A DNA stretch of 64,000 bases from Mobula hypostoma (taxonomy: Eukaryota), in contig NC_086109.1 of NCBI RefSeq assembly GCF_963921235.1, forward strand, positions 11,966,001 through 12,030,000. Direction: 5' to 3'. The position numbers were made by a program, and so were the translations under genes. The notes under the pieces are model-generated. The model did not search any database. It was not told the DNA's origin and saw nothing but the letters and a program-made list of their open reading frames with translations. Within the stretch, counting starts at the first letter, position 1. The number at the start of each line of letters is the position of its first letter. Positions 20,239 to 62,682 of the stretch are shown one piece after another.

Positions 20239-20477
20239 CGTCAGATACTTGTAAATACACATCAAACACTTGATGTTTGCCAGATGTTGTAATGCCACAT
20301 CTGTAATGCCCTGTACCATTAGAGTCAAGATTCTCCATAGTAACAGTAAATATTCCCTGAGATGTGATATCTCTGATTGTCATTCTTCCACACTGCATAG
20401 TGCATAGTGACAATCGATTGTGGTCGCTCTTCCCACAACTCCTCTTACTTTATCTTCTGTCCATAAAGCACCTGAAA
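20239..20477 (-). pseudogene. Ig V-domain pseudo-exon (module A) with a net 82-nt internal deletion
   Basis: Splice sites intact. Reads VSGALWTEDKVRGVVGRATTIDCHYA, then frameshifts at a tgcatag duplication (20394-20407). The C-C'' strands are missing compared with the 24-kb V exon. Confidence 0.9.
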
Positions 20478-22295
20478 CTGAGAGAGAAGTTTCTCAGAAA
20501 ATGGACAGGTAAAACCAAATTTACACAAGTGGATTGAAGATCCTATGTTGTTTAGTGTTAGTTCCTGTACGCAGTTGTAAAGGATAATGAAAATCATTGT
20601 TACTCTGCATCTGACTTAGAAAAAAAATACAAAAGATAAAGAACACAATGATAATAAAAAAGATGTTTTATGAAAAGCTGTTGCTATGTTTTAAACAATC
20701 TGACACACTGTCGATTGGTGTGATTAAATTCCACAAAGGCAACAGCATCATCCCTCATCACGTGCTCAGAGCTCTTCACAAGTAATGATTTTTATTTGAT
20801 TGGAGTCATCATTGTCACTGCCCACTAATGTCTCAGTGTACTTCCACATTTCTGAGTCAATAGATTACTGATCCAGTCCCATTCCAGGCAGGTGAGCATA
20901 AGGTCAGTAATGGGTAACTTACTGGAGGCAATTGTCTGAGACAGAATCTACCTTGATTTTACAAATGCAAGATCTGATTTGGGATGGTGAACATGATTTT
21001 GTGCATGGGAAATTGTCTTGCAAAAAATACGACTGAGTTTTATTGAAGAGATGACCAAAGGGATTGATGAGGGCAAGGCAGTCATGTTTGGCACATGAAA
21101 TTTAGCAAGTGCTGAGACAAGATCTCACATAGGAGACTGATCTGTAATACGGTAGGCTTTGAACTTTGAACTAGGAAAGTGGCCAATGGAACAGCTGATG
21201 GAATTGAACTCAGGTAGTGTGAGGCCATGCATGTTGGGGGATTAAACAAGGGCACAACTTACACAGTGAAGAACCAGGTGCGCAACTACATAGATCCCTG
21301 AAAATGGCAACACAGGTGGACAAAATGGGGAACAAGGCAAATGCCATGCTTGCCTTCATTGGATGGAGCATTAAGTACAGCTGGGATGGCATGTTACAGC
21401 TATAAAGGACATTGATAAGATCTCATCTGGACTACTCTGTGCAGTTCCAGAGGAAGAATGTGATTAATTAGAGAAGATACAGAAAACATTCCCAAAGATG
21501 CTGCTGGGACTGAAGGGTTTGGGTTATCAATAGGCTGGGACTGTTTTCCCTGAAGTGACTGCAGCTGAGGGGTGACCTTATAGAGGTTTCAAATAAAAAG
21601 GGCCAAAGTATTGTGGATAATCATAGTCTTTATCCCAGAGTAGGGGAGTAGAAAACTAGAGGGCCTAGACTGATAGTCAGAGTGGAAAGTCCCATTTTTG
21701 TCATAATGCTTGTGCCTTCCTCAGTCTCAAATTATGCAAAATACTTATTAGTTTGGTTCTCCATTTCTTTGTCCCTCATTACAACCTCTCCAGCATTATT
21801 ATCCAGTGGTCTGATATCCACCTTTGCTTCTGTTTTACTCTTCATGCATCTGAAACTCTTTTGGAATCCTCATATTTTTGGCTAGTTTCCCTTTATATTT
21901 CATCTTTTCTCTCCTTATAATATTTTTTGGTGCCTTCTGTTGGTTTTCAAAAGTTTCCAATTCTCTAAATTCCCAATAATTTTTGCTATATTTTATGTCC
22001 TTCCTTTTGTTTTTATGAATGTCACTGTCTCACAACTCAACACCCATTCCAGCATCTTCAATGCAGAAACCAGAAGTATAAAGGGAATGTTTTCAATTTG
22101 TCAGGATGTGCAAGTCCAACTATGTTTGAGATGCTCCATGTTTTCCAGGAGGAAGAACTACCCTATTTTGGCTGCAATGTGTAGCTTCTATAAATGGAAA
22201 GAAATTCCTTACCCTCACTAGAAGCATAAGAACAGCAGTAACAGAGGAACAAAAAAGAATATTGAAATGTATCCACCCTTGAAATTAGAAATTAC

Positions 22296-22616
22296 TGGTG
22301 CCATTGATTTCTGTCACATAACTGCAGATCTCTCCATTGCTGAAGATTGTCATTTTAACTGTTCCACTGATTTCTTCTCCAAATTTATTCGAGGCACTGC
22401 AGTAATATTGATGGTACTGGTGGTCCAAGGATTGACAATGTAGAGCCAGTTCATTGGTATTTGTGATCTGTGGATGCCCAGATGAGGTTTGTTCATACCA
22501 TGTGTACTGAATGGGAAGGGATCCCTGGAGAGACTCATAGGAAACTGACCCTGAGCCCCCGAGACGTGAGACATTTGCTGGTGACAGATATCGAAGCACA
22601 GGAACAGACACAGGTT
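22296..22616 (-). CDS. Second, C2/FcR-like Ig domain exon (module B), open frame, 321 nt, phase 1 to 1
   Basis: Acceptor tttttcacag|AA, donor A|gtaatt. Reads EPVSVPVLRYLSPANVSRLGGSGSVSYESLQGSLPIQYTWYEQ...LHCQSL...QYYCSASN...EICSYVTEINGT. The B-strand Cys position holds Tyr. Confidence 0.85.
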
Positions 22617-24069
22617 CTGTGAAAAAGAATCAGTGAACATCAGAAAATCAAAAACACTAAAGATTTCATCAGATCTGTATCTCAACCAAGACCCACCAGT
22701 TTAGAATTTCAGAAGCTCATCTACCTCTCTATATCATTGTATTCTCACAGCTGCCTGAGTTTCCATGTCTGCCAGTATTCCAGAACTCAGCAGGTCTCCA
22801 GATCAGGACAGCAGTGATTAAACTGAGTACGTGTCAGAGTGAACATCAGAATTACAATCTCTCTCAGCAGCAAGGAGACACCTAACAGTATGACTTTTTA
22901 ATGGAAGCATTTGTGAGTGTCCTGGAAAACTCTCCATAATGTGAAAGCAGGAAATTGTCAGATACAGACAAAATGGTGACTTTAGGGAGAGAGTATAATT
23001 GTGATTGTTTCAGTGACCTGCAGCAGGATGGGAACCCATTCATTTTGTTATCTGTATGAAGCCAACAAGGAATCATGCGAGACTGGAGAACCAGAAAGAC
23101 CATAGACCATAAGACCATCAGACATAGGAGCAGAATGAGGCCATTCAGTCCATCGAATCTTCTCCACCATTCAAACACAGCAGATTTATTACCCTTCTTA
23201 ATAGTGAGCATATTTTTAAGGTGATAGGGGGAAAGTTTAAAGGACTTCGTGAGACAAGATTCTTTACACCCAGGGTGGTGACTGCAGGGTGAAAACAATC
23301 AGATCAGTTAGGGAAAGGGATATTATAACAATATTTAAGAGGCTTTTGGATGAGGACATGAAAAGGGAGGGAATGGAGGGATATGGACCATATGCAGGAA
23401 GGTGGAATTAGCTTAGAATGATATCATGGTCAGTGAACACATGATAGGCCAAAGAGTCTATTCTTGTGCTGGACTGGGTCCCAGGTTCTCTCAAAATCCA
23501 TTGCTCTATTTCCCAGGAATGGGCCAGATGGAGAATCTGGCTACTGTGAAGTGAGTGGTAAGTGGGTGCTGTGGGGTGGAGTAGCGGAACACATCGACAG
23601 GGACAGCGAGAAAGAGCATGGGGTATGGATGGAGTGACTGATCTATGAAGTGTGGATGGGAAGTGGGATAGCCTATGAGAACTGAACACAGTTTGTTTTG
23701 ATCTTGGATCTGATTCCCTTTTTATGATTTTCAAAGTGTTTAGACTATGAGTTACTCTTGTTTCTCATCGGCCTGTTAGTGTTATTAGTACTTGTCTGAA
23801 TGCAATCCCCTGAGAAGTCGACATTTCAAACTGTGTTAGTGTAGGAAAATGTGCTGAGCCTCCCACTGGAGACCGGTGTCCCATCGGTGGGTTAGACCCC
23901 AACCTGGGTGAGAGCAATGTGAGTGGGGTTTCCCGAATCCTGCACACTCACCGAAGGGCTCTGCATTGCAACAGAGCTTCAAAATACTGGTGCTCCCCTG
24001 ACTCTTCCAGGAGAAAATACTGATCAGACATTTTGGTGGAGACGTCAAGTCAATCAATGAGAAACCTAC

Positions 24070-24387
24070 CATCAGATACTTGTAAATACACATCAAACAC
24101 TGGATGATTGCCAGATGTAACTCCACATCTGTAAAGTCCTGTATCATTAGAGACAAGATTCTCCATAGTAACAGTAAATATTCCCTGGGATGTGTTATCT
24201 CTGATTGTCATTCTTTCATACTGCTCATTTGTCCCATTTGTATTCACTGACGATGTGCATTGGTGACCCCACATGCGGCACAAATACTTTGTGTGTGAAC
24301 GGTACATTGGTGCATAGTGACAATCGATTGTGATCGCTCTTCCCACAACTCCTCTTACTTTATCTTCTGCCCATAAAGCACCTGAAA
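24070..24387 (-). CDS. CD300/pIgR/TREM-like Ig V-domain exon (module B), intact
   Basis: Acceptor ctccctcag|TT (an alternative in-frame acceptor lies 6 nt downstream, 24381), donor G|gtaggt. Reads VSGALWAEDKVRGVVGRAITIDCHYAPMYRSHTKYLCRMWGHQCTSSVNT...RMTIRDNTSQGIFTVTMENLVSNDTGLYRCGVT...VYLQVSD. Has the canonical B-F Cys pair plus the C-C' Cys pair typical of this family. Confidence 0.92.
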
Positions 24388-26088
24388 CTGAGGGAGAAAA
24401 TCTTCAGAAAATGGACAGGTAAAAGTCAAATTTACACAAGCAGATTCAAGATTCTAGATTGTTTCATGTTGATTGCTGTACGCCGTTGTAAAGGATAATG
24501 AAATAATTGTTACTCTGTATCTGATGCAGAAAAACAACACAAAAGTAAAAGGACACAATCATAATAAAAAAGATGTTTTATTTAAAGTTGTTGCTGTGTT
24601 CTAAAGAATCTGCCCACACTGACAACTGGTATAATTGAATTCCACATTGACTGGGAAGACAACAGCATCGTCCCTCATCATATGCTCACAGCTCTTCACA
24701 AGTAATGATTTTTATTTGATTGGAGTCATCATTGTCACTGCCCACTAATGTCTCAGTGTGTTTCCACATTTCTGAGTCAATACATTACTGATCCAGTCCC
24801 ATTCCAGGCAGGTGAGCATAAGGTCAGTAATGGGTAACTTACTGGAGGCAATTGTGTGAGACAGAATCTACCTTGATTTTACAAAGCCAAGATCTGATTT
24901 AGGATGGTGAACATGATTTTGTGCATGGGAAATTGTCTTTCAAACAATACGACTGAGTTTTATTGAAGAGATGACCAAAGGGATTGATGAAGACAGGGCA
25001 GTAGCATTTGTCACATGGAGTTTAGCAAGTACTGAGACAAGATCTCACATTGTAGACTGATCTGTAATGTGATATCACATGGTTAACCAGCTGGATAGAT
25101 ACTGAATTAACTTCGTGGAAGGAGTCAGATTGTGGTCGTGGAGTGTTGGTTTTCTGACAACATCAGATTTTATCACCAGTGATGTGTCATCGGGATCAAT
25201 GCTGCTGTTAGTTAACCACTGTCATTTCTTACCTATATTGATAATTTGGAAGGATAGTTCATCCACCTCCCTCTCTTCTTGCTACTACCATCAGGCAGAA
25301 GGTGCAGGAGTCCTGGGTCCCATGTCGTCGGCTGCTGGATTGGCTTCGCTCGGCTCACTGCTGAACTGACTCCTCAACTGTGATCTCACTTTCGGGGACT
25401 CTGCAGTTCACGTTCTATGTGTTATTTGTTAACATATTTTTATAATTTGCACAAAGCCCCCTCTTTTGCTCATTGGATGTTCGTGAATCTTTTTTGCCTG
25501 CGGCTTATCATGGATTCTATTGTGTTACTTTGTTTTGCGGACATCTGCAAGGAAATGAATCTGCAGGTTGTTTATGGAACACACACTTTGAACATTGGAC
25601 AAGGAAAGTAGCCAATGCAACAGCTGATGGAATGGAACTCAGACAGAGAGAAGTGATGCATTTTAGGAGATTAAACAAGAACACAACTTAGACAGTAGAG
25701 AACTAGGTGTGCAACTACATTGGTCCCTGTAAATGGCAACACAGGTGGACAAAGTAGTGAACAAGGCATATGACATGGTTGCCTTCATTAGATTGGGTAT
25801 TAAGACAAGACCTCACCTCAACTACTCTGTGTCGTTCCGGAGAATGGTATGATTAAATTAGAGAGTACAGGAAACATTCACAAAGATGCTGCTGGATCTG
25901 GAGGATTTGGGTTATGGATAAGCTGAGACTGTTTTTCCTGAAGTGAGTGTAGCTGAGTGGTGACCTTATTGAGGTTTACAAATTAAGAAGGACAAATGTA
26001 TGGTGGATAATCACGGTATTTATCCCAGGGTAGGGACGTCAAAAATTAGAGAACCTGGATGGAAAGTGAGAGGCACAAGTCTTGGAGG

Positions 26089-26952
26089 TGTTACGTACCC
26101 CGTAACTGGGTTGCCAAACCAGCAGAAATGGATCACTCAGTTGGAGTCTGGAGTACTAGAACTAAGAAAGTTTTATTAAAGAAACAAGCAACACAGTAAT
26201 CGAAAGGATAATAAATGCAACAGTTCAGTGATGATAAACACACATGTGCACAGAATTAAGATAACAGCATCAATCAAGCTCTATCGTTGTCTAGGGGTAA
26301 ATGACCAATTTCAAAATGACTCAAAGTTCAGTCCAGTTAGTAGTTCAGTTCGCAGTAATCGTTGCCATGGCGATGGACAAGGTGGGAGAAGAGAGACAGA
26401 GAGAACAGGAACAACTGATCATTCAGACACGGCTTCACTCACAGACCAGCGAGATGGCTCACAAGCAACTTTTGGGCGGGTCCTTGGTGATGTCACCTGA
26501 GGTCACCGACTGTGACCCCTCCTCCAGATGCGGTCGATCCTCTGCAGTGAACCCGGCACCCAGGCAAGGGCGGACACACACCGGGTTCCCGCTGATCGTA
26601 CCTTTCCACCCTTGTCGTTGTCTGACACTTCTCACCCACTCGTGAGAGGCGCACCGCTTCCAGGGTCTCGTTACCTCGGGTGGCGTGTGTCCCTGTCTTA
26701 GCGAACTTGTCCTTTTTTTATCCCCCTGCTGGGGCATCGCCTGTCCATCACTTCAAACAGTTCAGGGTTCAAAGTGGGGGAGCCGCTCCAGACAGCTCTC
26801 TCTCCCACATCCCTTCATTACACATCTCCAGACGCTGCTCCATTGTTCCTTATCTCTCCTTCCCCTGAGGGCAGGTGGCAGACCAACTGCTGATGCCACT
26901 GAAGCTAGCCCAGGCCAGCAAACATCTTAATTTTATGTGTATTCTCGTAACA
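26089..26952 (-). repeat. 3' LTR
   Basis: tgttacg...cgtaaca; about 15 differences from the other LTR by manual count (~98% identity). Confidence 0.95.
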
Positions 26953-26962
26953 CTTCCCCCCT
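26953..26962 (-). promoter_or_regulatory. Polypurine tract
   Basis: Minus strand gggggggaag directly precedes the 3' LTR. Confidence 0.8.
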
Positions 26963-27124
26963 TTAAGGATTTTTACTGGGAGGTAAAAATTACAAACATG
27001 ACTACATTATCTGATACATACACAATATACATCTTTAACAGTTATTTAGCTAATACAGAGAATTTGAAGCTGTCAACACCTTGACAGACAGTCATCACAT
27101 TTTCTGTTCCTTTTACACGTGTTA

Positions 27125-30085
27125 TTAATAATCCCTTAGACCAGGCTCCAACTCAGCAAACTTCATAGTGGCCAAAAACACTGATGAATTGCGACCAATG
27201 TAACCTCTCATTTGGTTTTGTCCCGGACCACAATAACAAGGGTCGTCCCATTCCGACTCAGTTTTCTCTCGCAAGGGCTTAGTAGGAGGGGGACGGGTAT
27301 TGACCGCAGAGTTATTGCAAAACTTCCTGCAGTACCCCACCATCTCCAAAAGCCTTCTGAGGGCCCTCTTGTCTGTCGGGGTTGGGAGGTCAGCGATAGC
27401 CTGCACTGTAGCTTGCATCACTGCCAGCTGCCCCTGTGTCACCACAATTCCCAGGTAAGTGACCCTCGTGTGGCCGAATTCATTTTTTTCAAGGTTCACT
27501 ATCAAACTGGCTTCAGACAGCCGTGTTAAATTGCCAATACACACCTCTGTGTTCATCAGCCCTTTAGTCACTGAATTACTCGAAAAATATGGGTGTTGTT
27601 TACTTGGCCGCCCTATTGTAACCACAATCACCCAACGTCCCAGTTCTTTGCATTTCCTCGGGACAATCAAACACATAGGTGCGAGTCGTTTAATTACTCC
27701 TTGAAAAGATTCGCTTTGTTCGGGGATTAAGGGAGAGACCTTATCAGTAGACCTGGCCAAAACAATAGCCTTCTCCCATCTGACCGATCCCATCCTAATC
27801 TTTTCAAAATGGTTTTTTTCTCTTATCAGGGGGCCCCTAGCTTCATTGATTTCCACGCTAACACCGACTAGGTTTGTTAGCATATCAAAAGCCGGTGACC
27901 GTCTCAGTTCGCGTCGGTCATGATCAATAACATTCTTCCCCCTGGGCAGCTGGTAAATCTCTTTCATGATTCCACCAACTGTTTCCTCCAGCACCGCAAA
28001 ATGTCCACCGTGGGGTACCTCGTGGGCCATGTTAAAAACCTCATCCCCATAACTCTTTTGCACCACCCCCCATTCCTCATCTGCGGGTACTGTACTTGAT
28101 TTCCCTTTCTTCCTTAGCACTTCCTCATCCGCACAATAGCTTGTCAAGGCTGTGTCAGAGAGAGCGGTCTCGGCAAAAACCATCAGCCCCTCGTCTCGCT
28201 CCTGCGTCTGCACAAATTCTTTCCTGGCTACTGCTACGTCCGTCCCAGCTCCCTCACTACCTCTTATCTCACTACACCCTGTCTCATACAAGGTTGGCAG
28301 AAATGTTTCAGCCAAATTCACCATCGCGGGCGGGGCCTCCATGCTGGCAGGCTGACCCGTCAATCTCACGACTGGGAACACGATTCCTCCGGCGATGTCA
28401 TTACCGAGCAAGACTTCCACGTCTTTCGTCGGTAATTCGGACCTCACCCCGATCGTGACTAGTCCAGAGACCAGGTTGCTCTGTAAATGTATCTGGTGCA
28501 AAGGGACTGACTCCGTCCCTTCCCCAACACCTTTGACCTCTACCTCCCCAGTCTGGGTCTCTGAGCTAAACTCTAATACACTCTTCAGTATTAGTGACTG
28601 ACACGCTCCCGTGTCTCTCCAGATCCGCACTGGAACTGGTTTTAACCTCTCCTTCACTGACACCAGTCCGGCCGAGATAAACCTCTCGCGCCCTTCCTGG
28701 ACTTTTTCAGACCTGTCCTTCCCTAGCGGTTGGCTTAACAGCTCAATACAGCCATTCAAAATTTCCGCTTTTCCTTTCCCCGTCTCCTTCCTTGGGGCAA
28801 AGCACCTGGACGCAAAGTGTCCGACTTTCCCACAATTATAACAGACGACCCCAGGAGACTTCCTACCAGACTGCTCCCGGTCTACCTTATCCTTTTCACT
28901 AGTCCCCGGCTTACTTTCTGACTTTTCCGGTGGACTCTCCCCGCCGTCCTGACTACCCTTCTGGTAGCCTTTACTCGGGGCAACCTTCATTTTATGCGTC
29001 AACGCATACTCATCCGCTAACTTAGCAGTTGCGGCTAACGTGGCTGCCTCTTTCTCATCGAGGTAGGGTCTCATACCCTCAGGGACACAACCTTTAAACT
29101 GCTCAATCAGAATCAGCTGCAGCAGTCTGTCATAATCCCCCTCTACCCCTTTCGAGGCGCACCAACGCTCACAATATGTTTGCATCTCACGAGCAAACTC
29201 CAAATACGTGCGGTCCCACTGCTTCCTCGCATTCCGGAACCTCTGCCGGTATGCCTCCGGGACCAACTCATAAATCCTGAGGATGGCCTCCTTCACCACC
29301 TCATACTTCTGGGCATCTTCCGCGGATAAAGCTGAGTAAGCTTGTTGGGCCTTCCCTTTCAGTACACTCTGAAGTAAAACAACCCACTTATCCCTCGGCC
29401 ATTCCTGACTTAGAGCCACCTTTTCGAAGTGGAGAAAGTACTGATCCACGTCGGTATCGTCAAAAGGGGGAACCAGCCTTACCTCCTGGGTCGCCCGGAA
29501 CCCTCCACCTTGGTTCGGCACGAGCCCCTGCTCGGCCCTTATCTTTAACTTCTCCAGCTCAAATTCCCTTTCCCTCTGTTTCTCCTCTCTCTCCAACTGT
29601 CTGTCCCTCTCTCTCTCTTCTCTCTCCAACTGTCTTTCTCTCTCTTGCCTTTCTACCTCTTTCTCTTTCTCCCGCCTTTCTAACTCTCTCTCTTTCTCCC
29701 GCCTTTCTAACTCTCTCTCTTTCTCCCGCCTTTCTAACTCTCTCTCTTTCTCCCGCCTTTCTAACTCTCTCTCCTGCCTTTCTAACTGCTTCTCTTCGTG
29801 TTCTAACTGCCGTACCCGGAACTCGTGCTCGAGTCTCAGTTTTTCAAGCTGTACCTGTACCGCGTCTCCAGCAGGTTTTTCAATAGACACCACCCCCAGC
29901 TCACCTTGGGGAAACACACCTTTAGATACATAGTGCTCTACAATAGCTCTGTGTATCTCCTCTCTCCTCATTGTCGACTTCACCTTAGCAAGATTCACCC
30001 GTTTGGCCACAGCTATCAATTCCGATTTCCTGGCATCCTCTAATGCCTCCAAGGTCGGCGCCTTTATAAATTCCTCAACCTCCAT
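27125..30085 (-). CDS. Gag(SCAN, CCHC)-protease fused to remnants of integrase and RT, 986 aa
   Basis: Coiled coil; SCAN/capsid-like region (LVPPF...YFLHFEK...ELVPEAYRQRFR...LILIEQF); zinc knuckle CYNCGKVGHFASRC; protease RDTGACQS...LLGND; integrase Zn-motif remnant AHEVPHGGH; RT thumb remnant LEKNEFG...YLG...LEMVGYCRKF. The YxDD and DDE cores are absent. Confidence 0.9.
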   Translation of the reverse strand: MEVEEFIKAPTLEALEDARKSELIAVAKRVNLAKVKSTMRREEIHRAIVEHYVSKGVFPQGELGVVSIEKPAGDAVQVQLEKLRLEHEFRVRQLEHEEKQLERQERELERREKERELERREKERELERREKERELERREKEKEVERQERERQLEREERERDRQLEREEKQREREFELEKLKIRAEQGLVPNQGGGFRATQEVRLVPPFDDTDVDQYFLHFEKVALSQEWPRDKWVVLLQSVLKGKAQQAYSALSAEDAQKYEVVKEAILRIYELVPEAYRQRFRNARKQWDRTYLEFAREMQTYCERWCASKGVEGDYDRLLQLILIEQFKGCVPEGMRPYLDEKEAATLAATAKLADEYALTHKMKVAPSKGYQKGSQDGGESPPEKSESKPGTSEKDKVDREQSGRKSPGVVCYNCGKVGHFASRCFAPRKETGKGKAEILNGCIELLSQPLGKDRSEKVQEGRERFISAGLVSVKERLKPVPVRIWRDTGACQSLILKSVLEFSSETQTGEVEVKGVGEGTESVPLHQIHLQSNLVSGLVTIGVRSELPTKDVEVLLGNDIAGGIVFPVVRLTGQPASMEAPPAMVNLAETFLPTLYETGCSEIRGSEGAGTDVAVARKEFVQTQERDEGLMVFAETALSDTALTSYCADEEVLRKKGKSSTVPADEEWGVVQKSYGDEVFNMAHEVPHGGHFAVLEETVGGIMKEIYQLPRGKNVIDHDRRELRRSPAFDMLTNLVGVSVEINEARGPLIREKNHFEKIRMGSVRWEKAIVLARSTDKVSPLIPEQSESFQGVIKRLAPMCLIVPRKCKELGRWVIVVTIGRPSKQHPYFSSNSVTKGLMNTEVCIGNLTRLSEASLIVNLEKNEFGHTRVTYLGIVVTQGQLAVMQATVQAIADLPTPTDKRALRRLLEMVGYCRKFCNNSAVNTRPPPTKPLREKTESEWDDPCYCGPGQNQMRGYIGRNSSVFLATMKFAELEPGLRDY
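29667..29774. repeat. 27-nt tandem repeat, 4 copies, encoding ERELERREK in the Gag coiled coil
   Basis: Unit ttctcccgcctttctaactctctctct repeated. Confidence 0.85.
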
Positions 30086-30161
30086 TTCTGCTGTTTGTCT
30101 TTTCTTTCTTTCGGGAATTTTAACCCAATCAATTTACTCCGTCCCAAATTTAGCGTTCAAA

Positions 30162-30179
30162 ATCCCGGACGAGCCCCCA
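30162..30179 (-). promoter_or_regulatory. Primer-binding site for tRNA-Pro
   Basis: TGGGGGCTCGTCCGGGAT, 4 nt after the 5' LTR; matches the established tRNA-Pro PBS used by MLV. Confidence 0.92.
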
Positions 30180-30183
30180 CTTA

Positions 30184-31046
30184 TGTTACGTACCCCGTAA
30201 CTGGGTTGCCAAACCAGCAGAAATGGATCACTCAGTTGGAGTCTGGAGTACTAGAACTAAGAAAGTTTTATTAAAGAAACAAGCAACACAGTAATCGAAA
30301 GGATAATAAATGCAACAGTTCAGTGATGATAAACACACATGTGCACAGAATTAAGATAACAGCATCAATCAAGCTCTATCGTTGTCTAGGGGTAAATGAC
30401 CAATTTCAAAATGACTCAAAGTTCAGTCCAGTTAGTAGTTCAGTTTGCAGTAATCGTTGCCATGGCGATGGACAAGGTGGGGGAAGAGAGACAGAGAGAA
30501 CAGGAACAACTCATCATTCAGACACGGCTTCACTCACAGATCAGCGAGATTGCTCACAAGCAACTTTTGGGCGGGTCCTTGGTGATGTCACCTGAGGTCA
30601 CCGACTGTGACCCCTCCTCCAGATGCGGTCGATCCTCTGCAGTGAACCCGGCACCCAGGCAAGAGCGGACACACACCGGGTTCCCGCTGATCGTACCTTT
30701 CCACCCTTGTCGTTGTCTGGCACTTCTCACCCACTCGTGAGAGGCACACCGCTTCCAGGGTCTCGTTACCTCGGGTGGCGTGTGTCCCTGTCTTAGCGAA
30801 CCTGTCCCTTTTTATCCCCCTGCTGGGGTATCGCCTGTCCATCACTTCAAACAGTTCAGGGTTCAAAGGGGGGGAGCCGCTCCAGACAGCTCTTCCTCCC
30901 ACATCCCTTCATTACACATCTCCAGACGCTGCTCCATTGTTCCTTATCTCTCCTTCCCCTGAGGGCAGGTGGCAGACCAACTGCTGATGCCACTGAAGCT
31001 AGCCCAGGCCAGCAAACATCTTAATTTTATGTGTATTCTCGTAACA
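30184..31046 (-). repeat. 5' LTR
   Basis: Direct repeat of 26089-26952. Confidence 0.95.
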
Positions 31047-31715
31047 GAGGGCCTGGAGGATCAGTGTTTTCTACACGGAGCAGTGTGTACATGGAAAAGG
31101 CTGTCAAAGGAAGAGTTAGAGGTGGGTACAAATACACTATTTAAAATACATTTGGACAAGTTCACGTACAGGACAGCTTTAGAAGGATACAGGCCAAATA
31201 CAGGGAAATAAGAGAAGCTCAGGAAGACACTGTGACCTTGGCCTGAAGCATCTGTTTCCATAATCTATAACTCTATAACTAGGCAACATCCTCTCTAAAC
31301 TGGACCACACTTTTGAAAGGTTAAATTCAGAGTTTTGTTTTATTGCATACATGTGCCAGCTTATGGAATCACAGCCAATTAGATTACACTTCAATTTCAA
31401 AGTTCAAAATACATTTATTATCAAAGTATGTGTACTATATACAACTAATGCAGACAGCCACAAAACAAAGAAACCCAATGGAACCCATTAAATAGGAAGA
31501 CCATCAAACACCCAATGTGCAGAATAAAAAACAAATCATGCAAACAACGAATAACATTCAGAACTGAAATTCACAAAAGTGAGTCACCGCCATGAAGCTA
31601 GTCATCACTGCAGATGATTCAGGAGTCCATTAATTCCAGGCCACAGCCTCAGTTCAGCACAGGCAAGTAAACACTGTGGAGCAGCAAGCTGAACACTGGC
31701 CCATTCCTTGCCTAC

Positions 31716-31801
31716 GAATGGTATCCCTGCAGTTTTTTTTACGTGTTTTGAAGATTTATTATCCTCTTCATAATCATGAAATGCAACAGCTTTGTTCATA
31801 T
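31716..31801 (-). pseudogene. Copy of the 86-nt exon-like segment ('X') with the acceptor mutated
   Basis: Reads MNKAVAFHDYEEDNKSSKHVKKTAGIPF|gtaggc. The acceptor is ctg instead of cag. Paralog of 57490-57575. Confidence 0.45.
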
Positions 31802-34096: not shown

Positions 34097-34409
34097 TGGT
34101 GCTGTTGATTTCTGTCACGTAAGTGCAGATCTCTCCATTTTTGAAGACTGTCACATTAACCATTGCACTGAATCTTGTTCCAAGCCAATTTGAGGCACTG
34201 CAGTAATATTGATGGTGCTGCCGGTTGAGGGATTGACAATGTAGAGCCAGTTCATTGGTACCTGAGATCTTTGGATGCTCAGATGAGGTTTGTTCATACC
34301 ATGTGTACTGAATGGGAAGGGATCCCTGGAGAGACTCAGAGGAAACTGACACCGAGACCCCGAGACGTGAGACATTTGCTGGTGACAGATATCGAAGCAC
34401 AGGAACAGA
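34097..34409 (-). pseudogene. C2-like Ig pseudo-exon (module C); acceptor and first codons deleted
   Basis: Reads SVPVLRYLSPANVSRLGVSVSVSSESLQGSLPIQYTWYEQ...YYCSASN...EICTYVTEINST|gtaagt. About 13 nt (cacagaacctgtg) present at 22.6 kb are missing. The upstream cag would give a stop in phase 1. Confidence 0.85.
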
Positions 34410-48380: not shown

Positions 48381-48842
48381 CTGCAGAGATACAAAACATC
48401 TTTGCGCCTTATGGTCTTCTGTTCTATGAGATGAAGTAATGCAGGAAGAGGATAGAACAATGTGTTTACATGAGCCATCCATTGGTCCTTCCCTAAATTC
48501 TGTTTTGTAAGTAAAGAAAACAGAAGTTCCAACCATATCCTTTGGGAACTGCTTTTGGATGTCCTCGGAAAGGGAAAGGGTCCCTTTCAGATTCAGAATC
48601 AGATGTGAAGTTTGTTGTTTGTCAGCAGAAATAAAGAAAACAAGTTCCTTCCCTCAGGTGATTAATTATCTCAGGTATAACAGGTCCTGATTCACACGTG
48701 GAACCACTGCATCTGGAATTATCTCCAGCTATCCACACACATCAGGTAACCCTGACCCGAAGAGATCATGAGCTCCAAACAGACTCTGGTGTTATTGCTT
48801 CACATCCTCACATAGCAGGTGAAGGATATCATGTCATATTGC

Positions 48843-51190
48843 ATAAGACCATAGATACATAGAATTAGGCCATTTGGCCCATTGAGTCTGCTCCGCCATT
48901 TCATCATGGATGCTCTAAATTTCTTCTCAGCTCCAGTTTCTTGCCTTCTCCCCGTATCCCTTCATGCCCTGACCAATCAAAAACCTATCAACCTCTGCCT
49001 TAAATATACATAAAGGCTTGGCCTCCACAGTTGCCTGTGGTAAAGAATTCCACAGATTTACCACCCTCTGGCTAAAGAAATTCCTCCTTGTCTATGTTCT
49101 GAAAGGACACCCCCCTCATTCTTAGGCTGAGTCCACTGGTCATGGCCTTTCCTACCATCAGAAAATTCCTTGCCATCTCTACTCTGTCAAGGCTTTTCAC
49201 CATTCAACAGTTTTCAATTAGGACATATCTCATTCTTCTGAATTCTAATGAATATAGGCCCAGAGCCATCGGGCCCTCTTCCTATGACAAACAATTCAAT
49301 CCTGGAAATTTTGTGAACCTCCTTTGAACCCTCTCCAGTTTCAGCAAACCCGTTCTAAGGTAAGGTACTCAAAACTGCTCACAATACTCCAAGTAAGGCC
49401 TCACCAGCGCTTTATAAAGTTTCAACATTACATCCTTGTGCTTATATTCTAGTATTCTTGAAATGAAAATTAACATTGTATTTGCCTTTCTCACCAGAGA
49501 CTCAAGCTGCAAACTAACCTTTAGGGAATCCCACACAAGGACTCCCAAGTTCCTTTGTGTCTCAGATTTTTGTATTTTTTCTCCATTTAGAAAATAGTCA
49601 ACCCTTTGATTTCTTCTACCAAAGTGCATGACCATAAACTTCCTGACACTGTATTCCATCTGCCATTTCTTCACCCATTCTCCCAATCTGTCTAATTCCT
49701 TCTGTAGCCTCTCTATTTTCTCAAAACTACCTGGCCCTCCATCTATCTTCATACTGCCTGCAATCTTTGCAACAAAGACAACAATTCCATCATCCAAAAT
49801 CACTGACATATAAGGCAAAAAGTATTGGTCCCAACACCGACCCCTGTAGAACGCCATGAGCCACTGGCAGCCAACCAGAAAAGACTTCCTTTATCAACAC
49901 ATACAAAATGCTGGAGGAACTCAGCAGGCCAGGCAGAATCTATGGACAAAAGCACAGTCGACATTTCGGGCTAAAACTCTTCGGCAGGACTGGAGAAAAA
50001 ATGCTGAGGAGTATTCAGCTACTCATCTGCAGATTATCTCTTGTTTATTCCCACTCTTTGCCTCCTGTCATTCTGCCACTTTGCTAGAATGTTCTCTGAA
50101 CTACCATGGGCTCATAACTTGTTAAGCAGCTTCATGTGTGGCACCTTGTCAAAGGCCTTCTGAAAATCCACGTACACAACATCAACTGATTCTCCTTTGT
50201 CTATCCTGCTTATTATTTATCAAAAAAATTCCAACAAATTTGTCAGGCAAGAAGCCATGCTGACTATGGACTATTTTATCATGTGCCTCTAATGACCCTA
50301 AAACCACATCTTTAACAATCGACTCCAACATCGTTCCAAGCATTGAGGTCAGACTAACAAGCCTATAATTTTCTTTCTTCTGCCTCTCTCTCTTTTTGAC
50401 GAGTGGAGTGACTTTTGAAATTTCCATTCCTTCGGAACCATTTCTGAAGCAATTGATTCTTGAAAGATCACTACTTATGCCTCCACAATTTCTTCAGACA
50501 CCTCTTTCAGAGCCCTGGGGTATACCATCTGGTCCAGGTAATTTATTTACTTTCAGACCTTTCAGTTTCCCAAGAACTTTCTGCTTAGTAATGGCAACTT
50601 CACACACTTCTGCCATCTGACACACTTGAACTTCCAGCATACTGCAAGTGTCTTTCACAGTGAAGACTGATGCAAAATACTTGTTCAGTTCATCCTCCAT
50701 TTCCTTGTCACCCATTATAGCTCTCCAGCATCATTTTCCAGCAGTCCAATATCCATTTTCGCCTCTCTTTTACATTTTATGTATCTGTGGAAACTTTTGA
50801 TGTCCTCTTTAATATTGTTGGCTAGTTTACTTTTGTATTCCATCTTTATCTTCTTAATGACTTTTTTAATTGTTTTCTGCTGGATTTTGAAAGCTTCCCC
50901 ATCCTCTAAGTTCCCACTAATCTTTTCTCTTTTATATGCCCTCTGTTTGGCTTTTATGTGGGATTTGACTTCTCTTGTCCATGGTTGTGCATCTTTCCTT
51001 TAGAATACTACTTCCTCTTTGGTATGTAAATATCTTGTGCCTTCTGAATTGCTTCCAGAAATTTCACCCATTGCTGCTCTACTGCCATCCCTGCAGGTGT
51101 TCCTTTCCAATCAATACTGGCCAACTCCCCTCGCATGCCTCTGTAATTACCTTCACTATACTGTAATATTGATACATCTGACTTTAGCTT
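48843..51190 (-). mobile_element. Degenerate CR1 LINE with a nested short repeat
   Basis: Fragments LYKALVRPYLEYC (49369-49857), NYRLVSL (50182-50427) and PGPDG (50494-50715). Penelope-derived repeat at about 49897-50045. Confidence 0.85.
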
Positions 51191-52329
51191 CCCACCTGTC
51201 AATGAGACATTTCTAAGTTCAAAATTCAAATTAAGTTGATTATCAAAGTACAGTACGTACATGTCACCATATACTACTCTGAATATAATGACAACAATGT
51301 AGTTCTCATTTTCAAGACCCTTTATTGTACTTTCATGGGTTACAGTCACAGATCAGTACTGAGAAAAGATACCCCTTCTATTTGCAGGTTCACACCCTGA
51401 TGACTAATGCAAGCTGCAATAATTTGCAGCTCACTCATTTTATTCAGCAGCCAACTTTTATTTCCATTACTTGTTCTCCTTTAAGACCTCTGTACAGTGA
51501 CTGGAAATTTTCATGCTTATTTCTATATTTCAGTCCATTTCTACAAAATGTGTTATGAAAGGTCAGTAATCGTGCACCTTATCAAAGTTGAAAAAATTTA
51601 TTATCAAATTTTATTATCAAATTTATTATCAACGTTTGCGTCACCAGAAGATTCGCCTTGAGATTAATTTTCTTGCAGGCATTCAGAGTAGAACAAAGGA
51701 ATATAATAGAATCAATTAAAAACACATACAGATACGTACAAACATACAATGTGCTCAGGAAGCAAACTATGCAAATACAATAACTAAGTAAAGATATAAT
51801 ATGGAAGACATGAGTTGTAGAATCCTTGAAGGTGATTCCATAGGTTGTGTTCAGTGATCATTTTAATGTTGAGGTGACTGAAGTTATCCACCCTGGTTCA
51901 GGAACCTCATGGCTGCCCTGTTCCTGAACCTGTTAGTTTGGGACCAGAGGCTCATGTACCTCCTTCTGATCAGTAGCAGTGAGAAGAGAGCACGTCTGGA
52001 TGATGGGGTTGTTGGATGAATCCTGCTTTCTTATAGCAGTACACCTTTGTAGACGTGCTCACTGGTGGGCTGGGCTTTACCTATCAACTGATCAGATCAG
52101 TCTTAACTAATCTCCATACAGACCGTCCCTGAGTGATGAATGGGTCCATTTTTACAGATGCCTTTGAGTCAATTCTGCCTGTAATTCAGAAAACACAACA
52201 AATATCACTCAATATGGTATCCATACTTCCATGATATTATTACAAAAGGCATCAACTGCATATAAAACTGAGATGAAAGAGTAATTCTGAAAAGTAGAGA
52301 GAGAGAAAACTGGTTCTATTATTTATGGA

Positions 52330-53235: not shown

Positions 53236-53238
53236 AGT

Positions 53239-56190: not shown

Positions 56191-56281
56191 CTTAGTTTCC
56201 CTTGTGAACCATGTGACTGAAATAGTGCAGGTCACCAGCAGAGCGAAGAGCAGCCAACGACCAACCTTCCATATCATGAAA
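56191..56281 (-). CDS. Transmembrane exon with basic residues (activating type), 91 nt, phase 2 to 0
   Basis: Acceptor cttcccctttactcag|T, donor AAG|gtaggc. Reads FMIWKVGRWLLFALLVTCTISVTWFTRETK. Confidence 0.78.
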
Positions 56282-56466: not shown

Positions 56467-57489
56467 CTGTGATCATCAGTTACAGGCACATAATTACTGT
56501 AACTTGGTCTCTTACAAATGAGTTCTTTGAATTAGAAACTACACAGTGAAAATGGATTCAGGAAAAATAAACATAAGAGGAAAGCAGAGCGAAATAATTT
56601 TTACTCTGGATCTGGTGCAGCAAAAAAGTACTGAAAAGATAAAGAACACAGTAATGAAGTGAACACAGCTGAGGGGTGACCTGATAGAGGGTTAAAAATT
56701 AAGAGGGACAGAACTATGGTGGATGGTCGCAGTCTTTATCCCAGGGCAAGGGAGTCAATAATCCGAGAGCCTTGGCTTGAGGCGAGAGGGGAAGTCTTAG
56801 AGGGTCTGGAGGGGCAGTGTTTTCCACACAGAGCAGTGTGTACATGGAAAAGGCTGCCAGAGGAAGTGCTGGAAGTGGTTACAAATACACTATTTAAAAT
56901 ACATTCGGACAAGTTCTTGTACAAAACAGCTTCAGAAGGATACCAGCCAAATGCAGGGAAATGGGAGAAGCTCAGGAAGACACTGTGGTCAGCATGGATG
57001 ATTTGGGGTGAAGCTCCTGTATCCACAACTAATAACTCTGCAGCATCCTCTCTAAACTGGAACACATTTCTGAAAAGTTAAATTCAGAATTCTATTTCAT
57101 TGCATAGATGAGTCAGATTATGGAATCACAGCCAATCAGATTGAACTTCAATTTAAAAATTCAAACTACATTTATTATCAAAGTATATATATTATATACA
57201 ACCTTGAGATTTGTCTCTTTATAGGCAGCCACAAAACAAAAAAAATGAAATAGAACTCAGTAAAAAAGACCGTCAAACACAAATGTGCAGAAAAAAACCA
57301 TGCAAACCATAAAAGTAAGCAAATTACATTCAGAACTTAAATTCGCAAAGGTGAGTCACAGACACAAAAACAGTCATCACCGCAACCCATTCAGGAGCCC
57401 ATTAGTTGCAGGCCACGACCTCGATTCAGCACAGAAATGAGTAAGGCTCATGGAGTAGCAAGCTGAACACTGGCCTGTTCCTCACTTAC

Positions 57490-57575
57490 GACAGGCATTC
57501 CTGCAGTGTTTTCCATGGATTTTGAAGATTTGTTATCCTGTACACAATCATGAAATGCAGCAGCCTTGATCATTC
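57490..57575 (-). CDS. Exon-like segment X with intact splice sites (86 nt, phase 1 to 0)
   Basis: Acceptor ctatgttcag|GA, donor GTC|gtaagt. Reads MIKAAAFHDCVQDNKSSKSMENTAGMPV. Confidence 0.45.
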
Positions 57576-58078
57576 CTGAACATAGATGCAATGAGAAGCA
57601 ATGGATTCCTTTCTCATATCTCAGAGTGAATGAGGTATTTTAATCAGCAACCAGAAACTCGAGTTTCAGCTGTTTCTAATATACAAGGTCTGCCCAGGAA
57701 ATCCTAAAGCTAATGATGACCATAAGACAAAGGGACCATAATACAGGAGGGCAGAATTAGACCATTCAACCCTTAGAGTCTGCTCCGCCATTCCATCATG
57801 CAATCCCAACACATGCAGAACACCACGAGTCGCTGACAGTCAAACAGAAAGGTTCTCTTTATTACCAGTCTTTGCTGCCTGACAGTCAGCCATAGTCTTT
57901 CCAGCAATAACATGGGTTCTTACCTTTTAAGCAGCCTCACGTGTGGCACCTTTGTCAAAGGCCTTCACAACATTCAAATAAACATTATCCACTGACTCTC
58001 CTTTGTCTGTCCTGCCTTGAATTTCCTCAAAAAATTCCAACAGGTTTTTCAGGCAATATTTCCTTAGTGACAAACAGT

Positions 58079-59172
58079 TCATAAAAGCATGCAGACATAG
58101 TCAAGAGGTTCAGTTGTTGCTCGGGCCAAACAAAGGAAATGAGGAGGAAATCGGTGAAACCCGACGCAGATTTGGGGACCGCTTCATCAAGCACCTCCGC
58201 CAAAACAGACAGGATCTCTCAGTAGCCACCCACTTCAACTCTGCTTCCCACTCCCATTCAGATATATCCATACATGGCCTCTTCTACTGCCATGATGAGG
58301 CTAAACTCAGGTTGGAGGAACAAAACCTCATATACCATCTAGGTAGTCTCCAGCCCCTTTGTATGAACATAGAATTCTCCAACTTCCGGTAATTCCCTCC
58401 CCCTCCCTTCCCCTATCCCTATGTCACTCTGCCCCTCTCCCAGCTGCCTATCACCTCTCTCATGGTTCCGCCTCCTTCTACTACCCATTGTGTTTTCCCC
58501 TATTCTTTCTGCACCTTTCCTGCCTATCACCTCCCTGCCTCCCCTCCCCCACCCCTTTATCTTTCCCCTTACTGGTTTTTCACCTGGAACCTAACAGCCT
58601 TCTCCTTCCCACCCTCCCCCCACCTTCTTTAAAGGGCCTCTGCCCCTTCCCTCTACAGTCCTGATGAAGGGTTCCGGCCTGAAACATTGACCGATCTTTT
58701 CCACGGATGCTGCCCGACCTGCTGAGTTCCTCCAGCGTGTTGTGAGTTTTGCTTTGACCCCAGCATCTGCAGATTATTTTGTGTTAAATGTGACCTTAGT
58801 AACTTTGATCGTAGAATGATAATTGGTACGAGAAGGGGAGGTTTGAGTATCTCAAAAACTGTTGATCTCCTGGGATTTTCATGCACAACAGTCCCTCGAG
58901 TTTACAGACAATGGTGCGATAAACAAAAAAAGTATCTAGTGAGCAGAAATTCTGAGAGCAAAAATGCCTTGTTAACGAGGCAAGTCAGAGAAGAATGGCC
59001 TGGCTGGTGCAAGCTGACAGAAATATGACAGGAGTTCAAATAATCAGTGTTGTACTGAAAAACAAGTCAAACCTTGAACTGAATGGGCCACGGCAGCAGA
59101 AGACCATGGACATACACTCAGTGGCCACTTTATGAGGTATGGGAGGTAGCTAATAAAGTGGCCACTTAGTGT
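58079..59172 (+). mobile_element. Tc1-like non-autonomous element interrupted by a Penelope fragment
   Basis: Homologous to 44280-44731 on both sides of the 58146-58787 insertion. Confidence 0.65.
58146..58787 (+). mobile_element. Penelope-like element 3' fragment (GIY-YIG endonuclease C-terminus plus 3' repeat)
   Basis: Reads IGETRRRFGDRFIKHLR...VATHFNSASHS...RLEEQNLIYHLGSLQP..MNIEFSNFR*, followed by a C/T-rich tract and the gctgagttcctccagc repeat. Confidence 0.8.
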
Positions 59173-60374
59173 TTAAAGGCAACATCTTGAGAGATGCCCA
59201 TCACATGTTCAGTGGCTTTCAGGGGTAAATGAAATTGTGAATGGGTTCAGTGACCAGCAGTAGAGAGGAAAACTTTTGGCACTGATATTAATGCAGAGTT
59301 ATTTGGGGATAGGCAAGGTCTGCATAAAGATCTTGCAATCTGTTCTGAGGCTGAGCAAGACGAGTAGGAGATTGCTGTTCTTCAGACACATCAACGAGAT
59401 GAGTATTTCTATATTCAGCAAGCTTATCCCCGAGACAAGCATGCCATCACTCCCCAGGACATCTAATGCATGAACCCTTCCCTGAGGAAATATGGATGAG
59501 ACAGGAATCTCTCATCCCTATCCACCAAGGTTTACATTTGACTTCAGATCGAGTCATGTTCATTACTCATTGGTCCACTGAAATGGCCCAGGGAAGACAT
59601 TGATTTTAAGACTATAATGTTACTTGTCATAGTGATCCGTGCAGAATAATATCACATTGCAGCAATGGTAGTCCTGATGTTTCAGCTTAACAGCCTCCAG
59701 ATTTCTCCACCTGGACTTATTCACCCCTCCACCAGGCTCCACACTATTCCCCTTTTCTCCTTATCTGCTTCCACCTCTCACTCACCTCTAAACCCCACCC
59801 CTTTTCCATCCCATTCCATTTGCCTGCTGTGCTTCAGCCTTGAAATCCGTCCAATGTTTCCATATCCTTCCTGCTATGTGGCAAACACAACTGCACACCA
59901 TACCCAACTGTTGCCAAACCATATTTTTATACATTTGCAACATGAATTGCTGAATGCTGTTTGCTGCCGCAATGTCATAAGCTCTCTTTCCAACTACTTT
60001 ACTATCTCCCTCTGTTCCAAATTTCAGGGAGATATGGACTTACACTCCAAGATTTGGACATCATTCTGGATCTTGCCTTGATGATAATTCAGTCAAACGT
60101 GTTCTGGGGAACTTGCTACTGAGGAAGGAGTGATGTAGAAGGGCTTATCATACACATTCAGCATACAGTACTTCTATTCAATTCCATAGCTTCTGCCCGA
60201 CCTGCTGAATTCCTCCAGCATTTTGAATGTGTTGCTTTTGGTTTCATTGTAGTGCAAGGGTTGAGGTGATTCAAGAACATGCATTGTATAGTATGCGTGC
60301 AGAGTCTATTGCTTCAGGCACTGCTGTCATCTGTGTCAGGATGTGGTTAGAACCTCTGTTTTCTAACATCTTAC

Positions 60375-60444
60375 CAAGCAAAATATAGGGAAGTACCATA
60401 TACAATACTATATATTGACAAATTATTTTGGTCTCTTCCTGCAT
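60375..60444 (-). other. Candidate leader-like exon, paralog of 48252-48380
   Basis: ATG to phase-1 donor: MQEETKIICQYIVLYMVLPYILL-G|gtaaga. The upstream acceptor is mutated (ctgcac). Confidence 0.3.
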
Positions 60445-62682
60445 TGCACCATCGCTTCTTGGAAAACTTCACCATAATCATGGTGAAATATGCTGATGAG
60501 AACAAGTGCAGAGATCAAAACATTTCAGCAAAGCATTTTATATCAGCAACTAGATCACTGAAAAACAATAACAATTTGATAAAGAAAAGTGAAAATCCAT
60601 TTAACCATTGTGTTTAGACCTCATCCCAATCATGTGCACACCAGCAAATATAACGGTGAGATTGTAAAACTTTTTTCCATTCTGTTGTTGTGAAGTTATC
60701 CAACGACTGCAGCTTTATAAGATATTGGTCAGACGGCACTTGGAATATGATAAACAGTTTTGACCCCCTCATCTTCGAAAGGATGGGCTGTAATTGTAGA
60801 GGGACCAGAGGAGTTTCCTGAGAACAATCCCAGAATCAAAAGGTTAATGTATGAAGCATGTTTGGACCGGTACTCACTGGAGTTGAGAAGAATGGTGAGG
60901 AGGGAAGGATTCTCATTCAACCATCTTGAATAGTGAAGAGTCAAGGACCTAATTGGAGTGTATGTGGAGAGGATGTTTCCTATGGTGAGAGAGTCCCTGA
61001 CCAACAGGTGCAGAATCTGTGGAATTAGATTAGATTATGAAGACACGTAGTCCCCTTTTATTGTCATTTAGTAATGCATGCATTAAGAAATGATACATTA
61101 TTTCCTCCGGTGTGATATCACAAAACACAGGACAAACCAAGACTGAAAAAACTGACAAAACCACATAATTATACATATAGTTACAAACAGTGTAACAATA
61201 CCATAACTTGATGAAGAAAGTCTGTGAGCACCGTAAAGTTCAAAGTTTCTCAAATGTCCCACATCTCTCGCAGACGGGAGAAGGAAGAAAAACTCTCCCT
61301 GCCATGCCGACCACAATCCGACTCTGAGTTATCCGAAAACTTTGAGCTCTGATCAGCTCTCCGACACTGAGTACTGAGCGGCATCTCTGCCAAACGATTC
61401 GATCTCCTTCTCAGTCGCCAAAAGCAAGCAAGGCCGGGGATTTTGAGGCCTACCCTCCGAAAGATTCCCAACCACACAGTAACGACAGCAGTGGATGGGC
61501 GTTTCAGAGATTTCTCCAGATGTTCCTCTGTGCTTTCATGTCCATTCTCCATCAAAACAGAATTGTCCACGGCCCCTATTTAACAGATGCGATACCATTT
61601 TTCGCCTGACAGCTGCGCAAGCACGTCGCGCTGCCATCTTCTCCTCCCGCCGATTCATTGTCACATACGACTGTGGAGGCAAAAACATTGGGGTATATTT
61701 AAAACGGAGTTCGACAGGCTTTTGATTAGAAAGGGTGTCTGAGGTTACAGTGAGATTAGGGTTGAGAGGGATAAATCAGCCATTATAGAATGAGGAACAG
61801 GCTCAATGGGCTGAATGGCCTAATTCTCACCCTATGTCTTATGGTGTGAAGTGATTGGGCAATGCTGGGAGAAAATAGAGCAGGTTGCTTATGTGAAGCA
61901 TCCATTGGTACTTCCCTAAATTCTGCTTTGTAAGACAAGTAAAGAGCACTAAAATTCTTAACTATACCCTTTGAGAATTGCTTTGAGGTTGCCTGGTACA
62001 GGGAAAGGTTCTCTTTCAGAATCAGAATCAGGTTTATTTTCACTGTCTTCAGATGTGAAATTTGTTGTTTTGCAGTGGATAAAAACAAAGCAAGTTCCTT
62101 CCTTCAGGCTATCAATGAGCTCAGGTTTAACAGGTCCAGGTTCACAAGTGGAACCACTGCATCTGGAATTATCTGCAGTTGATCAACACCCATCACATAA
62201 CCCTGTCCTAAAGAGGTCAAGAGCTCCAAACAGACTCTGGTGTTTTTGGTTCACATCCTCACAAAGCAGGTGAGGGATGTAATGTGATTCTCCTCCTTCT
62301 CAGTGGGGCATTTCAAAGTTCAAAATTCAAATTAAATTTATTATCGAAGTACATATATATCACCAACTACTAACTGAATTATAATTGCAAAAATGCAGTT
62401 CATCTTCTCATTTTCCGTGAACATTTATTATCCATTCATGGGTTACAGTAACAGATCAGTACTGAGAAAAGTTACATCTTGTATTTGCAGATTCACACCC
62501 TGATGACCAAAGCAAGCTGCAATAATTTGCAGCTCACTCATTTTATTCAGCACCCAACTTTTATTTCCATTGCTCGTTCTTCTTTAAGAACTTTGTAGAG
62601 TGACTGGAAATTTTCATGCTGTGTCTTTTTCTCACTCCATTTCTGCAAAACGTGTTATGAAAGGTCAGTAATCATGCACCTT

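Follow-up and report, generated by a model that had tools for sequence, protein, structure and literature searches.

The MDIRs, or modular domain immune-type receptors, are related to CD300 and to the polymeric immunoglobulin receptor (pIgR), and in RefSeq the label 'pIgR-like' is used. The MDIR family of the clearnose skate was reportedly described by Cannon et al. in 2006, in Immunogenetics 58:362, a reference given in PMC3031540. The locus described here lies in a window of 64,000 nt of Mobula hypostoma DNA (NC_086109.1; all positions given below are window positions) and is probably a single minus-strand MDIR gene of the inhibitory type, ~42 kb long (45.9 to 4.1 kb) and partly broken, whose tandem immunoglobulin (Ig) modules are its consecutive exons. 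It resembles the skate MDIRs in that a varying number of CD300/pIgR-like V and C2-type domains are arranged in alternation, in that inhibitory forms (with an immunoreceptor tyrosine-based inhibitory motif, ITIM) and activating-type forms (with a charged transmembrane segment, TM) both occur, and in that it belongs to a large clustered multigene family. Unlike them, the copy in the window comes from another batoid lineage and is partly decayed: its tail is truncated, and four Ig exons are dead or deleted. The family takes its name from this modular domain make-up (PMC3031540).

The proteins nearest to the window were from myliobatiform rays (Mobula, Hemitrygon and Hypanus), with identities of up to 91 %; these homologues are named 'polymeric immunoglobulin receptor-like' or 'Fc receptor-like 5' in the databases. 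The RefSeq models concerned (P0152, P0151, P0183, P0009 and P0011) have domains of the same types, arranged in the same order, followed by a stalk, a TM and an ITIM tail, but they are intact and none matches the window locus at more than 91 %, so that the locus is an unmodelled paralogue or a pseudogene. The mammalian CD300, pIgR and TREM receptors share the V-set domain with an extra disulfide (Pfam V-set, E 1e-11) and the pairing of ITIM-bearing with charged-TM forms, although there is no orthology and the ray proteins interleave C2 domains. The pIgR label in RefSeq does not imply a pIgR function (transport of polymeric Ig) for the ray proteins. The locus is an ordinary member of the known MDIR family, and points to neither a new type of receptor nor a new mechanism of diversification.

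The window is vertebrate DNA (GC content 38-52 %) with two assembly gaps (8780-8910 and 36857-36985) and abundant CR1-like fragments of long interspersed nuclear elements (LINEs) on either strand, whereas all of its Ig-type exons are on the minus strand. Five paralogous modules, A to E, had been proposed in a first-pass annotation, and the self dot-plot suggested there, carried out by self-BLASTN, recovered all five where they had been placed. Module A (20157-21661) matched module B (23990-26051) with 81-89 % identity and module B (21694-25534) matched module C (33459-39356) with 75-95 % identity; parts of modules C (31046-33765), D (40072-42906) and E (56799-58064) matched each other at ~77 %, and a further part of D (44335-51929) matched E (58786-63948) at 73-85 %. 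Collinearity of the alignments extends over kilobases, indicating segmental duplications and not chance matches between transposons. Overall, the module paralogues were 73-89 % identical, and this divergence of 11-27 % rules out duplication during assembly as their source. The division into two intron subfamilies (A/B/C and D/E) was also confirmed, as were nearly all of the exon states given previously and the phase 1-1 of every intact Ig exon. A tblastn search for V and C2 copies, with two open exons as queries, revealed three copies of each. The V exons were assigned to V-set by Pfam (E ~1e-11), and the C2 exons weakly to Ig_3 or Ig_C17orf99; module E contained neither a V nor a C2 exon.

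The exons and exon remnants attributed to the gene, in the direction of transcription and with Ig exons named after their modules, are as follows.

45892-45931, minus strand: leader exon, encoding MLWTLILLTDFLP; ATG at 45931 and phase-1 GT donor at 45891.
45076-45396, minus strand: V_D exon of 321 nt and phase 1-1, open and flanked by canonical AG/GT; counterpart of domain 1 of the homologues.
43819-44139, minus strand: C2_D pseudo-exon, with two in-frame stops and the donor GT changed to GC; acceptor intact.
36308-36316, minus strand: V_C deletion junction, where the counterpart of B 23702-24574 is lost.
34097-34411, minus strand: C2_C remnant; open reading frame (ORF) open, acceptor gone through an 11-nt deletion.
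24070-24387, minus strand: V_B exon, 318 nt, phase 1-1, intact, with canonical AG/GT; counterpart of domain 3 of the homologues.
22296-22616, minus strand: C2_B exon, 321 nt, phase 1-1, intact, with canonical AG/GT.
20239-20477, minus strand: V_A pseudo-exon, 239 nt long and frameshifted by an 82-nt internal deletion; splice sites intact.
10462-10540, minus strand: stalk exon, GPIHFCENTVTESMTTAQGKESASDK; 78-85 % identical to homologues.
9641-9732, minus strand: TM exon, HTYIIVLGVIGILLVLLVVCLLCYLRRKNR; uncharged.
6616-6662, minus strand: cytoplasmic exon 1, EWKPNTSHREGNNNTQ.
4118-4366, minus strand: last cytoplasmic exon, reading EMATLEENVTYTNLLHV and then TGA; ITIM VTYTNL before the stop.

BLASTN and a pattern scan of the minus strand from 20 to 64 kb found no leader exon other than that at 45931, and no stalk or TM remnants were detected by tblastn within modules B-D. 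Modules A-C lack a leader, a stalk and a TM, in agreement with the earlier statement that the cassette modules have no stalk or TM of their own. With one leader and one set of stalk, TM and tail exons for all of these modules, and with Ig exons that are collinear on one strand, a single gene is the simplest reading. The 3' exons of this ITIM gene (at 10.5, 9.7, 6.6 and 4.3 kb) fall outside the range covered by the first-pass annotation (20239-62300).

Four of the seven Ig exons in the set that the gene would originally have had are disabled or deleted. In the C2_C remnant, the closest AG upstream of the lost acceptor is out of phase. V_B carries both Cys residues of the extra pair (YLCRMWGHQC), and its highest amino acid identity (90.7 %) was to a Mobula hypostoma protein. 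In V_D, Tyr stands where the second disulfide would have its partner Cys, a residue kept in 208 of the 217 homologous V motifs (45220-45260 reads ...YWCHGWTHQYSV...); the identical change was seen in one Pristis protein (P0165).

The splice sites of the stalk, TM, cytoplasmic and last exons are canonical, and the phases of these exons agree with one another. The last exon is interrupted by a premature TGA at 4313-4315, a codon at which the homologues have Arg, and past it the same frame stays open across the Tyr motifs IVYADV and VTYTDI. This intact frame indicates that the truncation, which leaves one ITIM, is recent; it is possibly polymorphic. Part of the cytoplasmic tail exon recurs in inverted orientation (KCQRKSRAVHSATDEDNVTDAEIKFQSPP), with the Tyr of the motif replaced by Asp, on the plus strand at 8329-8415, near the gap at 8780-8910, amid local inverted repeats (8058-8222 vs 9143-9304).

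An exhaustive HMMER search with V_B as the query gave 2189 relatives, and many of these proteins had 2-18 V-like stretches each; a word-indexed named search gave 111 family hits. The window's own protein was not among these 111, consistent with a locus that has not been modelled as coding. Four homologues illustrate the architectures encountered.

P0009, Hemitrygon: V (D-type, 71 %), C2 (78.5 % to C2_B), V (B-type, 79 %), C2', stalk, TM, tail.
P0152, Mobula hypostoma, 948 aa: V (D-type), C2, V (B-type), C2, V (B-type), C2', stalk, TM, tail.
P0183, Mobula hypostoma: V, C2, V (B-type, 90.7 %), stalk, TM, tail.
P0011, Hypanus, 420 aa: V (D-type), V (B/A-type), C2, stalk.

Domains of the homologues map onto the window exons in genomic order and stand serially inside single proteins; that these domain types follow one another in an unchanged order within single proteins of rays and skates (V-C2-V-C2-V-C2-stalk), the skate MDIR2, MDIR3 and MDIR5 among them, indicates that the modules are exons of one gene. 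P0011 has the very architecture (V-V-C2-stalk) of the 45076/24387 junction that had been put forward in the first-pass annotation. In comparison with the Mobula, Hemitrygon and Hypanus models, V_B of the window was 78-91 % identical, V_D 77-81 %, C2_B 78-79 %, the stalk 78-85 % and the tail 63-70 %, and the genes of the Mobula and Hemitrygon homologues span 23-24 kb. The same HMMER family included proteins of Rostroraja eglanteria named in UniRef as MDIR3 (P0176), MDIR5 (P0202) and MDIR2 (P0233), which matched the V and C2 exons of the window with E values of 1e-22 to 1e-46 and 52-71 % identity (tblastn). Other hallmarks of MDIRs were likewise present: CD300/pIgR-like V domains with a second (CDR1-C') Cys pair (both Cys in V_B; V_D is V-set but has Tyr), Ig domains of several subfamilies in variable number, MDIRs having one to six or more (two V subtypes, D-type and B/A-type, and one C2 subtype in series, with 2 to 11 V/C2 domains in the homologues), and signalling ends of both kinds (the ITIM VTYTNL in the last exon and a K/R-bearing TM at 56191-56281).

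From these comparisons the original layout would have been leader, V_D, C2_D, V_C, C2_C, V_B, C2_B, V_A, stalk, TM and ITIM tail, and this seven-Ig ancestor may have been built by segmental duplication of V/C2 exon pairs within the gene, as in the intact six-Ig paralogues. Later decay deleted V_C, removed the acceptor of C2_C, introduced stops into C2_D and a frameshift deletion into V_A, and placed a stop past the first ITIM of the tail. The predicted surviving in-frame path would run from the leader through V_D, V_B, C2_B, stalk and TM to one ITIM, giving a protein of ~420 aa with a P0011-like architecture, whilst C2_D and V_A, having kept good splice sites, would act as poison exons. Given these poison exons, the premature stop and the lost Cys of V_D, a low-output, working receptor and a young pseudogene were rated about equally likely. 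Read in this way, the locus is a clear genomic snapshot of the birth and death of the MDIR modular ectodomain, in which intragenic duplication of exon pairs was followed by stepwise loss through small deletions, stops and lost splice sites; such birth and death at the exon level lies behind the modular cDNAs. It also serves as a warning for annotation, as arrays of this kind hold poison pseudo-exons with good splice sites.

The loss of V from module C was examined by sensitive alignment of modules B and C, because of the assembly gap at 36857-36985. B 23295-23702 aligned with C 35904-36316, B 24574-24631 with C 36308-36366 and B 24634-24847 with C 37148-37339, so that the 872 bp of B holding V_B are missing from C at ~36308-36316. 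The gap falls in the following feature.

36366-37148, no strand assigned: module C-specific insertion of 780 bp, not in B; contains the gap 36857-36985 and has no relation to the V exon.

The gap is ~540 bp away from the V deletion junction, which rules out that it hides V_C; since it sits in an insertion without a counterpart in B, the earlier call of a deleted V in module C stands whatever the gap contains.

Evidence from RNA was sought for the region 20200-26100, in four runs of one study whose kind was guessed to be RNA and whose coded organism label differs from that of the same-species runs. A 3.9 kb stretch was present in no sequencing run recorded as RNA, and a fraction of 0.07 of the C2_B exon words was present in one run so recorded. 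In the four RNA-like runs, depth was zero across most intron bins and contig pieces stopped at predicted exon edges (24387, 24070-72, 22616-19 and 22295). One contig joint linked 24070 to 22616 with GT..AG ends, that is, a V_B-type donor to a C2 acceptor, and in all four runs a C2-type exon end was joined to 24387 (C2 to V), as serial exons would predict. In relatives, the two members of a RefSeq isoform pair differ by exactly one cassette of Ig size (for example P0186/P0205, with residues 230-334 skipped, and P0001/P0159), so cassette skipping has already been modelled in the family.

Some further signals in these contigs were recorded. Paralogue contigs placed a segment of ~44 nt (25360-25403) between a C2 end and a V start, and expressed features were seen ~100-140 bp upstream of V_B and V_A (24490-24530 and 20631-20658, respectively); all three may be micro-exons or pieces of untranslated regions of related genes. 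Within the V_B-C2_B intron, 22958-23154 had a contig depth of 3500-9900 in all four runs, with matches resembling a CR1 tail nearby (23140-23402), and this signal probably comes from a highly expressed repeat family.

Several points weigh against the reading of the locus as one decaying MDIR gene. The contigs are 90-98 % alike to the window, and so speak to the splicing of the family at the level of paralogues or alleles and not to that of the locus itself; at 24216, 24249 and 24253 the best V_B contig pieces never carry the letters of the window, and the letters at the contig C2 ends (TA or TCA for CA) fit none of the three C2 exons of the window. Transcription from the leader at 45.9 kb is predicted, as is the splice from V_D to V_B, which would extend over 20 kb and past two C2 remnants. 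Values of dN/dS among the paralogous exons were 0.6-1.3, a range that cannot tell relaxed constraint from diversifying selection, and the structure of the upstream gene past the window end (64 kb) lies out of view. Of the competing explanations, the one with most in its favour is that the locus in its entirety is dead, a pseudogene that is the wreck of an MDIR gene with seven Ig exons and gives neither productive mRNA nor protein, and this was judged a serious possibility although its chance falls somewhat short of even. It would account for four disabled Ig exons out of seven, for poison exons (C2_D and V_A) whose splice sites remain usable, for the premature stop in the last exon, for a V_D without the Cys found in 208/217 homologous motifs, for the absence of the locus's own protein from the family hits and for the finding that same-species-labelled runs contained almost none of the sequence words. 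It accords less well with the leader, V_D, V_B, C2_B, stalk, TM and both cytoplasmic exons all being open with canonical splice sites, with a lesion in the tail that must be recent since the frame past it is intact, with the ITIM that the truncated tail keeps, and with expressed contigs that are 97.7-98.6 % identical to the variable core of V_B.

The first-pass annotation had proposed that the open Ig exons are joined to the single ITIM-bearing 3' end, in different combinations, or that the array serves as a reservoir for gene conversion. The joining itself is supported as the normal structure of the family; combinatorial use was not supported, the RNA evidence being at the family level. It was considered unlikely that V_D, V_B and C2_B are alternatively spliced onto one ITIM TM, or that the cassettes act as a bank of conversion donors for a functional V. 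Any subset of the Ig exons would be in frame because all are of phase 1-1, the RefSeq isoforms of related rays do differ by one Ig-sized cassette, and the family name itself reflects modular domains (UniRef names and PMC3031540), but just three usable Ig exons allow few combinations, no locus-specific isoform was seen in the four RNA-like runs over 20200-26100, and the dead exons resemble plain decay. As for conversion, exons of the A/B and B/C pairs are no more alike than their flanking introns and no tracts were seen, whilst the similarity of V_B and V_D is confined to the exons (pS, the proportion of synonymous differences, 0.19-0.35), with introns that cannot be aligned and no long stretch of identity apart from ~30 nt of framework 1. 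Dscam, the clustered protocadherins and the chicken Ig pseudo-V banks also have tandem, phase-compatible copies (of Ig exons here) upstream of a single constant 3' end, but there is no sign here of regulated choice or of conversion tracts, and most copies are broken. A more elaborate version, in which V_D, V_B and C2_B (perhaps with C2_C via a cryptic acceptor) are spliced to the single ITIM end in several different combinations and the dead exons are regulated poison exons that tune output, was held to be a little less credible still; if true, combinatorial splicing would give a small ectodomain repertoire from one locus. The least probable explanation, to which very little weight was given, is that the modules are separate single-module genes in a tandem cluster. 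Modules D and E were indeed duplicated as whole-gene units, sharing the C-terminal exon of the preceding gene and intergenic DNA, but A, B and C lack leader, stalk and TM, their flanks resemble introns and run on into one another, and homologous proteins bear these domain types in series. A single, partly decayed MDIR gene thus remained the preferred reading.

Upstream of this gene, features of an activating-type paralogue were identified.

56191-56281, minus strand: orphan activating-type TM exon, FMIWKVGRWLLFALLVTCTISVTWFTRETK; K/R-bearing, splice sites intact.
51444-51540, minus strand: activating-type C-terminal exon, copy 1, with stop and AATAAA.
62547-62642, minus strand: activating-type C-terminal exon, copy 2, with stop and AATAAA.

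The arrangement is richer than the earlier description of one TM gene at each end of the array, with two activating-type C-terminal exons in addition to the TM at 56.2 kb. The duplicate C-terminal exons indicate that D and E were copied as whole-gene units that included the 3' end of the preceding gene, and the exon at 62547-62642 probably forms the 3' end of another gene, whose start lies past the window. Activating-type homologues were 82-87 % identical to the TM exon at 56191-56281 (FMIWKVGRWLLFALL...). Upstream of it, the window has no leader, Ig or stalk exon, and no activating-type stalk exon was found in module E, so that the TM is an orphan unless fed by exons past 64 kb. Module E, from which leader, V and C2 are deleted, is together with this TM and the 51.5 kb C-terminal exon what remains of a gutted activating-type paralogue upstream.

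The CR1 remnant said to recur at module boundaries is real and corresponds to a C-terminal piece of CR1 ORF2 on the plus strand. Its copies, and the long terminal repeat (LTR) retrotransposon that interrupts one of them, are listed below.

21157-21681, plus strand: CR1 remnant of module A, cut off at the A/B junction 21681|21694.
25585-26088, plus strand: CR1 remnant of module B, split by the LTR element and resuming at 31046.
40008-40300, plus strand: CR1 remnant of module D, with ~450 bp of the 5' part deleted and the left flank retained.
56655-57050, plus strand: CR1 remnant of module E, the most complete copy, uninterrupted; empty site of the LTR insertion.
26089-31045, minus strand: LTR retrotransposon with 864-bp LTRs 98.3 % identical and target-site duplication GGAGG/AGAGG, inserted in the CR1 remnant between B and C.

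Unequal crossover mediated by CR1, as suggested previously, was not borne out. At the only mappable junction, A/B (21681|21694), the plus-strand C-terminal piece of CR1 ORF2 meets an N-terminal piece of LINE ORF2 on the minus strand; as these are opposite strands, and CR1 3' vs LINE 5' parts, the junction is not the product of homologous exchange between CR1 copies. Elsewhere the flanks of the remnant are conserved on both sides in several modules, which marks it as an old insertion copied with the repeat unit as an internal passenger. The left flank in module D (40008-40062) is 94.5 % identical to A 21157-21211, and the 55-bp flank common to D, A and B shows a simple deletion of ~450 bp at the D/C boundary; an LTR remnant at this boundary was ruled out, no similarity to the LTR element being present. 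The mechanism of the older duplications is not readable from the sequence.

The LTR retrotransposon is young. It has one uninterrupted Gag-like ORF of 1002 aa (27128-30133, minus strand) with SCAN (capsid-like) and zf-CCHC domains and no recognizable pol. Possible readings are a non-autonomous element with Gag only and a gag undergoing domestication; a tandem repeat lies within it at 29.56-29.80 kb. Two copies of another element, 80-92 % identical, occupy separate insertion places in the upstream region of module C (37351-38516 and 39376-39955) and are absent from module B. Finally, an insertion of ~600 bp specific to module D (42911-43515) was observed between a LINE fragment and C2_D, with ORFs that resemble parts of another retroelement.

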